From Octopus bimaculoides (lineage: Eukaryota), in contig NC_069008.1 in the NCBI RefSeq assembly GCF_001194135.2, forward strand, positions 9,544,166 through 9,608,165: a stretch of DNA of 64,000 nt, written 5' to 3'. The notes under the pieces were generated by a model, which was not told the DNA's origin, ran no database searches, and saw only the letters and a program-made list of their open reading frames with translations. A program made the position numbers and the translations under genes. This document shows, in pieces, positions 5,939 through 62,155 of the stretch; position 1 is the stretch's first letter, and the number at the start of each line of letters is the position of its first letter.

Positions 5939-6064
5939 ATGTCCGCACAGTCGTCGCGTTATAACACTGCGAGGTCAACTTCGTGGTTGGGCGGCGGCGG
6001 CGGCCCTACTGGCTCCGCTGACCTTCTGGACTGTGTCTTCCGCCCCCTGTTGGCCTGCTCCAAG
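5939..6064 (+). promoter_or_regulatory. GC/CpG-rich 5' leader of the MAN2A-like exon 1, with an in-frame upstream ATG
   Basis: CpG-rich stretch (GGCGGCGGCGGC) in AT-rich DNA directly upstream of ATG 6065. ATG 5939 is in frame with no intervening stop. Confidence 0.5.
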
Positions 6065-6190
6065 ATGAAGAAGTATATGGCCCTGTGGGGCTCTCTCTTC
6101 TTTTTCGTCATATGTGTCTCTCTCTATCTGATGATGGAGACCGTCAACATGAACAGCAGAGCCAATGTTAGGCTGGCAGACTTTGACGAG
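6065..6190 (+). CDS. MAN2A1: First coding exon of a Golgi alpha-mannosidase II (type II membrane signal-anchor)
   Basis: Encodes MKKYMALWGSLFFFVICVSLYLMMETVNMNSRANVRLADFDE: short basic tail, hydrophobic anchor ending in the SLYLM motif of vertebrate MAN2A1/MAN2A2 N-termini. Good start context (AAGATGA) and a phase-0 donor GAG|GTGAGT at 6191. The MAN2A1 vs MAN2A2 label is not resolvable. Confidence 0.8.
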
Positions 6191-8440
6191 GTGAGTAATT
6201 TTTTATTTTGTGGTAGTCCCTTGAAGTTTGCCCCAAACATATCGGAAAATCCTTTTTGTTTATGTTTTGATTTGTCAGTTATTTCTTTATTATTGTTATT
6301 ACTAATTTCGCCATTTTATTCAATGTAATCTTACCACACCGCTTTATTTTTGTGTAAGTCCCCATATCTTGGGCCGTTGTCACCGACGGCAGATTTGGAG
6401 ACATTTAATCCTCGCAGTCTCTGGTTCTTTACGTTCTGAGTTCTTGACTGGTACTTTTTTTTTTTATCTACCCCGAATGTTTGGTATGTGAACGTAAAGA
6501 ACCTGCTCGCCGCTTTTATTTTTCTAATAGTTACTGGTAATAGTTTTTAACTGGAGAAATTTGATGCTAGGGTCAGGTATTGCTCCCTCAGTATTTGAAC
6601 GTTGTCGATCCTCGATGAAAAATAATTTTGTTGGAGAGGCGTTGGATCAAGGGAACATAACAAAGACCAGGCTAATACAATGTGTGTGGGTTTAGTTTAT
6701 TCAGAAATCGAATGAAAAATATGTATGTATAATTGATGGACGCAGACAAACACTTCTCTTTTTTTCAACCATTGAAGAAAAAGTGTGTGACTCCATTGTT
6801 GGAGAAGCGCTGCGGCCCTCAATCAAAAGTGGGTTGACTGTGTGGTTTTATATTTTAACCTGTTTGTTGCATCTTTTCCTCTCTCTCTCTCTCGTGTTTA
6901 TTGTACATGCCTACCCATAAAAAAAAGTATTTGGCGAAGTACACGCCTGACTGTTTTTTTTTTAAACAAAGGAGTCCTAAAACTTCTCTATATTCTGGAC
7001 GTATCGTGGCCGAACGGCTGAGAAGTTCGCTTCACAATTATGCGGTTCGATACCTTTGCATATGATATTGGGCAAGTGTCTTTTATCATAGCATCGAGTG
7101 GACTGAAAGTGCGAGAATTACGTTAAAAGTACATGTGTGTCAGTGGAATGTTCGGTTACTTCGGCAGAGTATCACCTTTTTGGATGTGTGTGTGTGTGGA
7201 GGACGATTGGGTGTGATTTGTGGGAAATTTGGTTATTTGGTTGTTAATTTTAGCATGTCTAGCTATCATGTAGAGGTTTCCTCACGCGCACACAAAGTAG
7301 AGTAAATAAATATTGAGGGAGATGTGGTTACTGTTTCTAATAGAATTAATTACCACATCGATTTACACGTATATATGTAATACACAGTGGGTGTGGCTTG
7401 AGGGAGATTTGGTTTCTATTTGTAGCATATCAAGCTATCACATGTAGAGGTCTCGCTTGCTGGCGCCATACACACTCACATATACCTACACAAATGTCTC
7501 CCAAACCTAATCCAGAAAAATGGATATTTCTTTGATGAAATTTTCTGCAAATATCTCTCAGATGGTGTAGATTCCGATATTATCAGAATTTGTTGTGCAA
7601 AAGTTTTTTCGAGGGTGTGGAGAGGAGTTTCGGAAAAGTCACACGTGTTGCTGTTTCCTCATAACTTTCCGACAAATGGATATTTCTTTTAATGAAATTT
7701 TCTATAAATTCTTTTCAGATGATATATTGTATCATTATATCGGAGTTTGATATGTGAAAAAAAAAAAAAAAAAGAAAAAATCTTGATAAGCTCGCACACA
7801 TACACATTGACAGATATCACAAAATAAAACTTGAATTTTCAAAGAAAAAAAATCGTGACGTGTGTCAATATGTATATGTACGAGCCCACCAATGTATTAA
7901 CTTATTAAATTCCTATATAATCGTAATATACACCATCTGAAAGAAATTTAGCTGCTATTTCTAACAGAACTAGCAACCACGTAGACGCTGTCTAGTTTGC
8001 ACGTACGATTGTATTGTTGTTTAACCTTAGGTCAGTGTTGATCGAGTAAAGACATGTGTTCAAAAGCATTTTCAACTGTGATCATCTCGTTTTGGTCAAC
8101 TTTTACCGTCGTTTTTCTCTATGTTCAGGAAACTTAGGATATCGTAATCCAACGTATCGTTTTCTAAGACAAAAATAGGGCGTGATATGAGTAGATTTGG
8201 CTGCTATTTCTAACAGTTCTAATTTAGACGTGTTTCTCCCGCGTTGTCTCTCTTTCTCTCTCTCTTTCTCTCTCTCTCTCTCTCACACACACAAACATAC
8301 GCGTACATACATAAATAAAATAGTAGGTTGTGTGATCTGAGGGGAGAGCTTTGGCTGTTATTTCTCTCATCTCGTTTGATGTCTTTCCGACCAGTTTTCC
8401 GCACCCTACACAAAACCCCACTATTTATTTCTATTTTTTT

Positions 8441-8625
8441 TCTTGTTTAAGTCATTAGGCTGCAGCCATGTTAGAGCACCGCTTTGAAGAATTTCTGTTG
8501 AATGAATCGACCCCAGTACTTTTCTATCGGTAACTTCTGGCAAACCGCTAATTTACGGGTATGTAAGCGCACCAACACCGATTGTCAAGCGGTGGTGAAC
8601 AAACACAGACACAAAGACGCGATAT
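8441..8625 (-). mobile_element. Octopus OR-type SINE, 3' part
   Basis: Reverse complement of the tail ...GCTTGACAATCGG...GGTGCTCTAACATGGCTGCAG...TGACTTAAACAAG, which recurs at 20215-20430, 32912-33060, 33865-34050 and 37560-37748. Confidence 0.7.
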
Positions 8626-59273: not shown

Positions 59274-59959
59274 CTGCAAAAAATATATTTGGGGGAGATA
59301 GTTGAAATATAATGTATGTGATATAGTTTGTTAGAGCTTTATAATTTCAAAGAAAAATTTTAACAATAATTAAAAAGGAATCTGATTTAACAAGTTGCTA
59401 TACTTTCAAAAGCTCTACTTGACTACTAATTAGACCACGTAAGCTGTGCCAAACACTTAATATATTAACATCAATATAGAAGAATGTAATATAGAGATCT
59501 TAAACTCTTCGTGACACATCATTTAACTTCCCCTAGTCATGCAATCCCAAAAATGGCAATGCACCTAAGTGAATAAAAAACAGAAAAGATTAACAATTGT
59601 AATACTCTTGTGATATTCTCTAATATTTAGACTTAAAAACCAAACAAAAAAATGCAATACTATGCACAAATTACTGTGGTTGAGAAGAATTGTACATAAT
59701 GCACAAGAGAGAATACAGTGCTGGCATAGGTAAGTAATGTCTTTGGAAAATTTTAGTCATGCCAAGTGAGCACTCCAAGTGATGGAATTTGTGAAAGGAA
59801 GAGACCAAGGATGACATGGGAAGAAATGGTGAAAGCTTGGAGGAATGGGGAGAAAAAAATGGACAGAAAACTGAGGATGGTGGTGGTAATGGTAGTAGTG
59901 GTAGGATGAATAATACAAACATTTGGGGGGCGGTTGTCTTATACCCATTATATTCTTAT

Positions 59960-61045
59960 AATGTGCGTATATGGCTCTATTACAGACCATTTTGATAACC
60001 TTATTATCATGGCTGATGACTTTAATGGATATGTTAGGCTACACACAGATACCTACTTGTGCATACATGGAAGCTATAGATACAGTAAAAGGAATGAAGG
60101 CTTAGTATTTTGAAGCACAAATGACCAAGACATTTGCAATGTTATCTTCCAGAAAAAAAACTAGTCAGTCACATGACCATCTGCTGCTCATGTAAACATG
60201 TATGCCAAAAAAATTGCATACTCACTAGGAAACAGGATGGCCAGCTAATTATGAAAGCTAAGTTTTTCACCAGTGAAGAATGTAGCATTCAACATAGTTT
60301 GATGATTAGTAACTTCAAAAACAAGAATTAGACAAACTCAGAGATGAGACAATCAGGAGAAAGGTGTGGAAACTGAAAGATCTCTATTAAACACTGATTC
60401 AAAGAGGTTTCAGATGAGGAATATGTTGAGAAGGAAAAATGACATAAGACAAAAAGTATAAATATACAAGACAGCCTGCTACAGCAAAGTTTCAACCAAA
60501 CATGATGATATGATGGGGGAATGGTACAATAGACAGACCCATCAAAGCTATATGACTGGTAAGATGAGAGTAGGGAAGAACATCAAGAAACTAGATGAGA
60601 AGCTAGACAACAGGTATACAAAGCAAAGAAAGAAGCAGAAAATAAGAGGTTTGTCAATGTACTCAGACAAGAGAGGTAAAGTGTTTTAAATTGCAAAGCA
60701 GTGTATCAGTATGTGAATCAAGACATCATTCAGGAAAAGTACATCTGGAGTGACAATGGTACACTCTCCATTACCATACTGAAAAGAAATTCTTGGAAAT
60801 GCTGCTATAGAGAATATAGAGAATGTGTGGGGAACAGAAGCCTTCTCTATATAAAGCCAACATAAGGATGAGTTAAGAAGATGACACCTGTACAGTCAAA
60901 GTGATTGAAAAACATTAAAGGAGGGAAAGCAGGTGGCCTGTCAAGGATAGTCAATGAAGTGTTGAAAATCAAAGTAGGAGTAGTGCTATTCACTTGTATA
61001 GTCAGCCATGTAGTACAAAGAAGTGACATGCCCTCATTCATTTGT
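59960..61045 (+). mobile_element. Highly decayed RTE LINE filling most of the MAN2A intron 59274-61107
   Basis: ADDFNGYV-like and RKVWKLKD-like remnants and KAGGLSRIVNEVLKI...CIVSHVV, paralleling 38040-39400. Confidence 0.7.
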
Positions 61046-61107
61046 CAGAATATTCAAACTCAACACAGAATTATTCACAGAAAGAAATTAATATTAAATA
61101 TACTCAC

Positions 61108-62155
61108 AAGAGGGGAAATCTTTCTTATTTCAAGAAGAAGCCGGAATTTGTTAGGGGTCTGTTTGTTATCAAGCACACCCTGGCCCAGACCTCGGCTATC
61201 ATCTTGGTTGAGGCGACGGTCCAACATCACTTCCATCTCACCAGGCTTCAGATAGGCAGCTCCAAGTGACTGACCAGATAGGATGTTTAATCGTTTCTGA
61301 GAATTCTCCACAAACATAGCAGTTGGCATGGGATAGTAGTTGGCCTGCAAAGGCAACTTGCTGTATGTTTTACGCCGGTGCATCTGGAAACCATTTAGGT
61401 CAGTGTGGAAAGAGTTGTCCTCACTCTTAATATCACTACACACCCTCATGGCTATCTCAAAGTTCAGTTTGTCTCTAATGTCCACTATATTGTAGATGTC
61501 CAGTGACAAACTATCTGCACCTGGTGAATTATATAACCTCACAACATGCTCTACATTTTCCACAAAGACACTCACTTCAGATACAACAGTGCCTTGAATG
61601 ACACGAATGAATGGGTCGACAATTGTTACTTCCCGACCTTCACCATCTGGCAGGAATAGATAAGCACCACTCTTTTCAGAAGATTTTCGAGTGCCATATG
61701 TTACAAATTTGATGCTGACTGGGTGTGTAATACCCTCTGCTTTAAATGTGATGTTTTGTAACAGCCCTGTTGCCTGGCTGAAGCCAGCCTTCATGTAATA
61801 GTTCTCAAGACTGAAGGGCTTTGATGGGGACTTCTTTATTGTGAACACTGAACTGGAATGTTCCATGTTCATGTTTGAGTTGTAAAATGTTATCTCCGAT
61901 GGCACAGCTTTTTTTGTGGACAGTTTGTGTGTTTTTTCGATTGTGTATTGGCAAATGCCCAATGCTTGGATGGCCATCACAAATGACACCTTGTAGACGT
62001 CTGTGGAGACAGAATCCCGGTCAGTCCAGAACAAGTCAATCTGTGAAGGAATGATCTTTCCCCTAGGATCTCTGACAATAACAAATGGGGAGTCGACATA
62101 GACACTGACTACAGTCTCTCGCTTATGTGCCAATGAGTTGTAAAATATAACAGAC
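61108..62155 (-). CDS. MAN2A1: 1048-nt internal exon of Golgi alpha-mannosidase II (GH38 C-terminal region)
   Basis: Acceptor TTTTATTGTAATTTTCTAG|G and donor CTT|GTGAGT; open throughout. Motifs SVIFYNSLAHKRETVVSVYV, SGAYLFLPDG, FHTDLNGFQM, KLPLQANYYPMP and EVMLDRRLNQDDSRGLGQGVLDN are characteristic of MAN2A. Confidence 0.97.

Follow-up and report, generated by a model that had tools for sequence, protein, structure and literature searches.

Golgi alpha-mannosidase II, an enzyme anchored as a type II membrane protein, trims N-glycans. The octopus protein described here shares the domains PF01074, PF09261 and PF07748 with the known forms of this enzyme (MAN2A1/MAN2A2; Drosophila GMII, PDB 1HTY, 1QWN and 3BUD) and, across the full query length, is 44 to 50% identical to vertebrate MAN2A1 and MAN2A2. 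Compared with these enzymes the octopus protein is ordinary; only the layout of its gene in the assembly deviates. In the window (the whole stretch of 64,000 nucleotides of Octopus bimaculoides DNA that was analysed, on the chromosome scaffold C28), the head of the gene lies on the + strand and its tail faces it on the - strand.

The alpha-mannosidase 2x-like gene of Argonauta hians (P0003; GCA_054771915.1, BAAFZT010000055.1:7675071-7723419) has a 15-exon structure in common with Octopus, and its exon 1 ends on the same residue. Head (90% identical) and tail are found within this one gene, whose exons are colinear on a single strand. It is compact (28 kb), whereas the Octopus gene would, by our reconstruction, cover about 200 kb and is scattered in the present assembly.

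The assembled layout also resembles the errors of Hi-C scaffolding (HiRise, 3D-DNA and similar). The likeness lies in a switch of strand at gaps of default length and in small pieces that are about 1 Mb off on the same chromosome while others are left unplaced. In the present case such an error is deduced from the structure of the gene and from related species, not from reads or a contact map. Sequences of insufficient length are prone to inversion in Hi-C scaffolding (PMC9292758). The O. bimaculoides assembly is given, in the passage of Supplementary Note 1 of PMC9068888 that deals with it, as a HiRise/Hi-C re-scaffold of the shotgun assembly of 2015 in which gaps were left unclosed; HiRise scaffolding and a '100 bp default gap' are described there.

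The two ends of the gene

The following parts of the gene are located in the window.

5939..6190, + strand: exon 1, coding part; cytoplasmic tail and putative type II signal anchor of the single MAN2A-type gene
61108..62155, - strand: exon 13 (1048 nt); region of the GH38 C-terminal domain (PF07748); XP_014779423.2 rebuilt exactly
58941..59273, - strand: exon 14 (333 nt); exact reconstruction of XP_014779423.2 and O. vulgaris comparison
58370..58522, - strand: exon 15 (153 nt including the stop, end ...KITPY); exact reconstruction of XP_014779423.2 and O. vulgaris comparison

A signal-anchor exon with a clean donor had been noted previously on the + strand at 6065-6190, and rereading the sequence bears this out: a second ATG at 6065 is followed by MKKYMALWGSLFFFVICVSLYLMMETVNMNSRANVRLADFDE and then by gtgagt from 6191. 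Upstream of 6065 the frame is open as far as the ATG at 5939. The exon ends in phase 0 at its GT donor (6191). A hydrophobic stretch, ALWGSLFFFVICVSLYLMM, stands directly behind a short basic N-terminus, as in a predicted type II signal anchor, and this region has 90 to 98% identity with the N-terminal ends of proteins named alpha-mannosidase 2 in Argonauta and O. sinensis. The motif ...SLYLM... in the N-terminus is one that we take to be MAN2A-like from its likeness to human MAN2A1. Translation of 5939-6190 gives 84 aa, whose identity is 100% with a database fragment (P0147), 97.6% with O. sinensis XP_036371270 (P0121) and 90% with the Argonauta protein; searched against the 2.34-Gb genome, the exon 1 peptide has no match other than its own locus.

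At the other end, the earlier note, made from the sequence alone, had placed the last three MAN2A exons and the stop on the - strand from 62155 to 58370. Identical limits are obtained when XP_014779423.2 (O. bimaculoides alpha-mannosidase 2x, 862 aa) is rebuilt by splice-aware alignment, which gives one unique and exact solution with AG/GT sites throughout exons 13 to 15. Exons 6 to 12 also lie on the - strand, reaching about 87-90 kb to the right of the window and crossing many further gaps. The suggestion that all - strand exons lie in one ungapped contig holds for the three in the window, but not for these seven. Exon 13 is 98.5% identical to O. vulgaris at the nucleotide level, and in the comparison with this species exon identity is 98.3% and intron identity 86-88%. 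Exons 9 to 15 carry only 7 non-synonymous differences in 701 codons (dN/dS 0.065), so any inactivation of MAN2A would be very recent.

The - strand part has nothing ahead of exon 6, and about 110 positions at the start of the catalytic domain are missing. The NCBI model XP_014779423.2 starts at an internal Met within this exon, its Pfam GH38N match runs from profile position 129/270 and, aligned with Drosophila GMII chains, it starts at about their residue 182-212. Over the 112 kb that precede exon 6 on the - strand, tblastn detected none of exons 1 to 5. A - strand match at 193350-193174 (counted from the window start; about 129 kb past the window end; E=0.1), obtained as a lead with a human MAN2A1 query, was considered as exon 1 of the - strand gene and rejected as a chance match: it has neither a start codon nor a convincing anchor, and the exon 1 peptide of the window does not match it. 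The later mapping of exons used database proteins.

Identity of the protein

Judged from its sequence, the gene in the window belongs to glycoside hydrolase family 38 and is orthologous to Golgi alpha-mannosidase II (MAN2A). The N-terminal catalytic domain of this family (PF01074) is matched over profile positions 1-68 in exons 3-4 and 129-270 in exons 6-8. The stretch between positions 68 and 129, which falls in exon 5 and at the beginning of exon 6, is only partly present, exon 5 being missing from the assembly. Protein P0141 scores 81 bits on PF09261 (middle domain) and 105 bits on PF07748 (GH38 C-terminal), each of which passes the curated cut-off. Exon 3 (C28:8.586 Mb) contains HTHCDPGW; the GGWVMTDEA stretch is assigned to the missing exon 5 and can be read in the O. 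sinensis orthologue, which is 98% identical. We take HxHxDPGW to hold the zinc ligands and GGWVMxDEA the nucleophile Asp, with positions from Drosophila GMII.

Across Metazoa, every top match bears the name alpha-mannosidase 2 or 2x. Among solved structures Golgi mannosidase II comes closest (E=5e-176, with jack-bean mannosidase at 2e-41), and the protein is closer to MAN2A than to the lysosomal and cytosolic GH38 enzymes (MAN2B1, MAN2B2, MAN2C1). The octopus gene is a conserved Golgi mannosidase II orthologue that has already been annotated, in pieces.

Location of the remaining exons and copy number

Exon 2 (C28:8574426-8574752, - strand) and exon 3 (C28:8585599-8585877, - strand) were each found once, on the same chromosome about 1 Mb to the left of the window and in the wrong order relative to each other. 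Exon 4 was also found once, on an unplaced contig of 2 kb (C90144:1854-2036); exon 5 was searched for across the assembly and not found. Exons 2, 3 and 4 are bounded by canonical AG/GT sites, their phases (0/0, 0/1 and 1/2) match, and the splice sites and phases of all the exons located are compatible with one transcript. Joined into a composite, exons 1 to 4 align along 100% of their length, at 98% identity, with a single O. sinensis protein that continues into exon 6.

All located exons of this MAN2A-type gene are single-copy in the genome. Apart from it there is one MAN2A-type locus, a complete gene without introns that lies on a different chromosome (scaffold C6). Exons 6 to 15 match the - strand of C28, and their only other match is the 42%-identical intronless ORF on C6.

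Head and tail are assigned to one gene because its exons are single-copy, the - strand part is incomplete, exons 2 to 5 lie elsewhere, the splice phases fit and the gene is colinear in relatives. The two facing ends are thus very probably the first and last exons of one gene that the assembly has scattered and mis-oriented, an artefact and not a gene architecture.

Another reading, also listed in the earlier note, is that two MAN2A paralogues overlap in antisense, the 3' end of the - strand gene being nested in a first intron of more than 55 kb of the + strand gene. The one point in its favour is the raw layout of the window. Such a pair requires two complete copies at the locus, but each strand is incomplete and no exon has a second copy anywhere in the genome: the + strand is devoid of MAN2A exons beyond exon 1 in the window and the next 200 kb, and the - strand gene has no exons 1 to 5 of its own and lacks part of the catalytic domain. 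Both ends, moreover, belong to a single gene in relatives. Since exon 1 and the tail exons are single-copy, we regard this reading as refuted, with a residual probability close to nil.

The canonical splice sites and compatible phases of all the dispersed exons would also suit a genome in which the pieces are truly dispersed and separately transcribed precursors are joined by trans-splicing. The data do not need this, however. Close relatives have ordinary colinear genes, and the missing exon 5 and unplaced exon 4 point to incompleteness of the assembly; we consider trans-splicing scarcely conceivable here.

The sequence between head and tail

No + strand MAN2A exon was found between 6190 and 58370 by tblastn (E<=1) with Argonauta, cuttlefish and O. 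sinensis proteins, in agreement with the previous reading of the sequence. In the interval from exon 1 to the tail, the ORFs are remnants of transposons (reverse transcriptase (RT), RNase H, protease, gag/SCAN-like, LINE endonuclease and Tc5-type DNA-binding domains) or have no Pfam match, and no host gene was found among them by ORF and Pfam analysis. Scans of the window with Rfam (gathering threshold) and ARAGORN gave no matches.

The N-runs lie where they had been reported, and no exon is interrupted by any of those in the window. The gaps at 39182-39191 and 39750-39772 have a colinear bridge from other copies of the same repeat; bridges were also sought for the gaps at 21534, 23559, 24392, 26561, 27681, 32119, 37185 and 41130, and none was found. 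Two gaps between head and tail are of exactly 100 N. They are listed here with the gap nearest to the tail.

24392..24491, no strand: gap of exactly 100 N (C28:9,568,557-9,568,656); candidate scaffolder join of the exon 1 block to the next block
41130..41229, no strand: gap of exactly 100 N (C28:9,585,295-9,585,394); candidate left boundary of a 183-kb block
55446..55897, no strand: ordinary sequence gap downstream of the 3' end of the gene; no orientation break in the O. vulgaris alignment

The 183-kb block extends from window position 41230 to 160.5 kb past the window end. It contains exons 6 to 15 on the - strand, and the old NCBI model XP_014779423.1 lies wholly within it.

Orthologous O. 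vulgaris DNA (L042) spans the gap at 55446-55897 colinearly, and 326 bases replace the Ns there. Identity is 86-87% on both sides, with order and strand unchanged, down to window position 53810. The left end of the - strand block can be traced only this far, since L042 beyond 47008 matches multi-copy LINE sequence only. A mis-oriented contig to the right of this gap had been put forward as an explanation. The kind of explanation is kept here, with a different unit to flip. Flipping the sequence to the right of 55446-55897 fails to restore colinearity because the O. vulgaris DNA is colinear and in the same orientation across the gap, because the - oriented part of the gene runs about 90 kb further right and because exons 2 to 5 are outside the neighbourhood.

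The gene in other cephalopods

In single-strand gene models, exons 1 to 6 cover 113,169 bases in O. sinensis and 112,443 bases in O. vulgaris. RNA-seq contigs of the cuttlefish clade, about 5.1 kb in length, carry head and tail in one uninterrupted ORF of 1192 aa; the contigs are spread over 92 listed blocks, and 24 of them were read. Comparison of the 10-kb flanks of the Argonauta gene with Octopus gave an interspersed repeat common to both and no orthologous flank.

In O. sinensis and O. vulgaris, too, the assemblies break this gene up. Breakage in three Octopus assemblies could hint at an intrinsically odd locus instead of three independent assembly failures. If the locus were truly rearranged in O. 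bimaculoides, or unstable across Octopus, this would imply either a very recent split rescued through trans-splicing or a new loss for which the intronless C6 paralogue makes up, and we hold this to be highly improbable.

A probable origin of the layout

The real gene consists of 15 exons and probably covers about 200 kb in Octopus, because of very large introns filled with transposons. Ordering and orienting of fragmented short-read scaffolds by Hi-C has very probably split it, leaving exon 1 on the + strand and exons 6 to 15 on the - strand, with exons 2 and 3 misplaced about 1 Mb to the left, exon 4 left unplaced and exon 5 lost inside a gap. The head-to-tail layout thus very probably reflects both wrong orientation and wrong placement of assembly blocks.

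The simplest repair that we can infer is inversion of the 183-kb block between the 100-N gaps at 41130-41229 and 224551-224650 (counted from the window start, the latter being 160.5 kb past the window end). This would bring exon 6 onto the strand of exon 1 and 108.5 kb downstream of that exon's ATG, compared with a distance of 112-113 kb between these exons in O. vulgaris and O. sinensis. A single inversion leaves exons 2 to 5 elsewhere, so several independent placement errors would be needed. Both the block boundaries and the orientation in the animal are proposed as candidates, deduced from sequence comparison.

A real chromosomal rearrangement, in the species or in the sequenced individual, could also have turned part of the locus round and cut exon 1 off from the rest, leaving MAN2A recently broken. 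The deposited sequence does itself have the opposite orientation, the complete intronless gene on C6 could compensate, and the locus is discontinuous in two other Octopus assemblies. Against this, at least four breakpoints would be required, all intronic and leaving every exon and splice site intact; an exon on an unplaced contig and another that is missing are facts of the assembly; and the switch of orientation coincides with unbridged gaps, two of them of the scaffolder's default length. With exons 2 to 5 scattered, one of them unplaced, and strong purifying selection on the intact exons, the real inversion considered in the earlier note is very unlikely, and we retain mis-assembly of a single gene.

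Consequences for annotation

The result has little biological weight, as the gene is an ordinary conserved one; its practical use is as a flag of assembly quality. The region at about 9.55-9.77 Mb of C28, the pieces at 8.57-8.59 Mb and the unplaced contig C90144 appear to be mis-ordered and mis-oriented. Studies of synteny, intron size or gene content, and counts of cephalopod GH38 genes, that use this assembly should treat the two annotations as one gene. As a consequence of the faulty order and orientation, the current annotation splits the gene into an N-terminally truncated model of 862 aa (XP_014779423.2), which corresponds to exons 6 to 15, and an orphan fragment of 84 aa, which corresponds to exon 1.

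Head and tail of the gene

Exon 1 of a MAN2A-type gene (Golgi alpha-mannosidase II, 15 exons in all) can be read in the window on the + strand, from an ATG at 6065 through the peptide MKKYMALWGSLFFFVICVSLYLMMETVNMNSRANVRLADFDE to a gtgagt donor at 6191. Its frame is open 5' of 6065 as far as another ATG at 5939. Translated from there, the exon gives 84 aa, which match a database fragment (P0147) at 100% identity and the N-terminal end of the O. sinensis 'alpha-mannosidase 2' at 97.6%. In a six-frame search of the whole 2.34-Gb genome (145,327 sequences) the window copy was the sole match to the exon 1 peptide, the runners-up having E>4. 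The in-frame upstream ATG (window 5939-6064) places 42 extra residues (MSAQSSRYNTARSTSWLGGGGGPTGSADLLDCVFRPLLACSK) before MKKYM…. Since this extension is kept in the O. sinensis and O. vulgaris models while the Argonauta model begins at MKKYM, it is uncertain whether 5939 or 6065 is the true start.

The protein XP_014779423.2 (alpha-mannosidase 2x, Octopus bimaculoides, 862 aa) has a single splice-aware solution on the - strand, in which every residue is reproduced. Its last three exons, with AG/GT sites, lie in the window:

62155-61108, - strand, exon 13
59273-58941, - strand, exon 14
58522-58370, - strand, exon 15, with the stop

These two readings bear out the earlier note, which had placed a head on the + strand and a tail on the - strand at these positions. 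It had also seen no MAN2A exon on the + strand in the interval between them, and none was found there by tblastn with three cephalopod orthologues.

The - strand part is an incomplete gene that covers exons 6 to 15, with exon 6 lying 87 kb past the right end of the window. The first residue of XP_014779423.2 is an internal Met, the protein matches the GH38 N-domain from profile position 129 of 270, and its alignment to Drosophila Golgi mannosidase II chains begins only at about residue 182-212. None of exons 1-5 was found on the - strand within 112 kb upstream of exon 6. Across the whole genome the 862-aa protein matches this strand of scaffold 28 (C28), whose bases 9544166-9608165 are the window, and one 42%-identical intronless ORF on another sequence, C6, and nothing else. 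With head and tail each unique and the - strand part not a whole gene, the idea that two MAN2A paralogues overlap here in antisense is refuted.

In an older NCBI model, XP_014779423.1 (990 aa), exon 6 is fused to 111 residues that come from a fragment of retrotransposon pol (…YTDHKPLVYAF…NTAADALSR…). The pol-derived part lies on the - strand at 203414-203746 in extended coordinates, counted on from the window start (139.4-139.7 kb past the window end, locus L028). Because exons 1-5 are missing, this model is a chimeric annotation.

Scattered exons

Exons 2 and 3 lie about 1 Mb to the left of the window, in a mutual order that is wrong for the - strand:

C28:8574426-8574752, - strand, exon 2, single copy in the genome
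C28:8585599-8585877, - strand, exon 3, single copy in the genome

Exon 4, also single copy, is on an unplaced contig (C90144). Exon 5 is absent from the genome searched, where its matches are paralogues only (42-63% identity). As read, the dispersed exons have canonical splice sites and interlocking phases: exon 1 ends in phase 0, exon 2 is 0/0, and exon 3 leaves one base of a Gly codon to which exon 4 gives the other two. Joined together, exons 1-4 match one O. sinensis protein along their whole length at 98% identity, and exon 6 on the - strand is 100% identical to the continuation of that same protein. Head, tail and scattered exons belong to one gene, not two, and they fit a single transcript.

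Comparison with relatives

In Argonauta hians all 15 exons are colinear on one strand within 28 kb, in an assembly that is gap-free at the locus; the protein begins MKKYMAVWGSLFFFVICVSLYLMM… and ends …KPNDITTFQVTPH. In O. sinensis and O. vulgaris, exons 1 to 6 are linked in gene models on a single strand that span 113,169 and 112,443 bases respectively. We infer that the gene takes up about 200 kb in Octopus, compared with 28 kb in Argonauta. A transcript of the kind named in the earlier note as refuting evidence, with head and tail together, is seen in relatives rather than in O. bimaculoides itself: in the cuttlefish clade, RNA-seq-assembled contigs of about 5.1 kb (92 blocks of the collection list them; 24 contigs were read) carry a 1192-aa ORF without interruption, in which MKKYMALWGSLFF… and the tail …ISAFK… both occur.

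Both other Octopus assemblies, O. sinensis GCA_006345805.1 and O. vulgaris GCA_951406725.2, likewise show this gene in pieces (proteins P0121, P0139, P0146, P0001, P0140 and P0142-P0144). Exons 1-6 form one model of about 112 kb ending after exon 6, on a 29.19-Mb record in O. vulgaris and a 15.1-Mb record in O. sinensis, and the C-terminal half is on separate records (a 12-Mb record in O. vulgaris; 51-72-kb contigs and a 17-Mb record in O. sinensis). The collection searched contains no MAN2A protein of full length from Octopus. Two O. vulgaris models (P0122 and P0146) join exon 1 straight to exon 3; exon 2 has 309 nt and phase 0/0, so that the skip leaves the frame intact. The stalk region may truly be alternatively spliced, or this assembly may lack exon 2 as well.

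The MAN2A exons are under selection. Between O. bimaculoides and O. vulgaris, exons 9-15 give a dS of 0.066 and a dN of 0.0043 (dN/dS 0.065), with amino-acid differences at 6 of 701 codons; identity is 98.3% in exons and 86-88% in introns. A real inversion that orphaned exon 1 would account for the opposed strands, but with so low a dN/dS and such exon identity any true break by rearrangement would have to be very recent, and we consider this explanation very unlikely.

Probable position of the assembly error

The head-tail confrontation is very probably an artefact that arose when a fragmented assembly was scaffolded with Hi-C; the gene itself is one ordinary, conserved orthologue of Golgi alpha-mannosidase II. 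The earlier note's mis-oriented contig thus survives as a kind of error, namely assembly mis-orientation, but not as the unit to be flipped, which it took to be the contig that starts after the 452 N at 55446-55897. An orthologous O. vulgaris locus (L042) aligns on both sides of this gap at 86-87%, order and strand being unchanged, and has 326 bases where the Ns stand. This alignment reaches leftward to 53810, so the - oriented sequence extends at least that far.

Among the other gaps, two short ones (39182-39191 and 39750-39772) are spanned by further copies of the LINE in which they lie, and the 10-N gap at 47384-47393 is inside a retrotransposon pol gene, flanked by a reverse-transcriptase-like ORF and RNase H in the right order on the same strand. 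Bridges were sought but not found for those at 21534, 23559, 24392, 26561, 27681, 32119, 37185 and 41130. Four gaps in the 264 kb examined have exactly 100 N (extended coordinates):

24392-24491
41130-41229
224551-224650
263883-263982

These would be joins made by the scaffolder. A 'default gap of 100 bp' is named for this assembly (PMC9068888, Supplementary Note 1). According to a review of the method, inversions and misjoins are more frequent with Hi-C scaffolding than with other methods, the reason given being that orientation is reliable only with sufficiently long input sequences (PMC9292758).

The block 41230-224550 fits a single input scaffold, because XP_014779423.1 (203746-58373, extended; the former about 140 kb past the window end) lies wholly within it. 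With this block inverted, exon 6 would share a strand with exon 1 and would end 108.5 kb downstream of the exon 1 ATG; the two congeners have a similar distance, 112-113 kb. The near agreement fits inversion of the block as the error but does not prove it. The misplaced exons 2-4 and the lost exon 5 are further, separate assembly defects. The useful outcome is a corrected gene structure, together with a warning about this part of the assembly and about how it is annotated.

Two segments of L042:10334-11408 (315-385 bases, 87-91% identical) match 143843-146654 (extended). Both are just upstream of exon 9 in O. vulgaris; in O. bimaculoides they fall within intron 6, some 47-50 kb away from the colinear position. 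They may be low-copy repeats or reflect a further local mis-ordering in one of the two assemblies.

Sequence between head and tail

Only transposon relics were found between head and tail, and these fill most of the span:

about 38066-40657, + strand, LINE with endonuclease domain, many copies nearby
about 46994-49518, - strand, LTR retrotransposon remnant (DUF7041 gag-like domain, RNase H)
50451-50828, - strand, Tc5/pogo-type DNA-binding fragment
about 51258-53842, + strand, LTR retrotransposon remnant (SCAN-like gag, protease, RT, RNase H)

No RNA families or tRNAs were found in the window. A SINE-like interspersed repeat of about 120-150 bases, with no tRNA and no Rfam match, occurs in many copies in both orientations, for example at 33132-33248, 34053-34203 and 37398-37549 in the window and at 80354-80518, 107598-107759, 126081-126197, 170063-170192 and 218849-218971 in extended coordinates. 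It is also present in Argonauta gene flanks (about 75-80% identity).

Intronless paralogue

The ORF on C6 is a second MAN2A-type gene:

G000:C6:16892775-16896900 (O. bimaculoides genome), - strand, uninterrupted 1368-aa open frame without introns, partly in locus L001

It encodes a signal anchor of its own (…RLFILFGATFFSFAFFLLF…) and a long stalk rich in Ser, is 42% identical to the C28 gene, and looks like a retrogene-type paralogue. It is complete by itself and does not need the window's exon 1.
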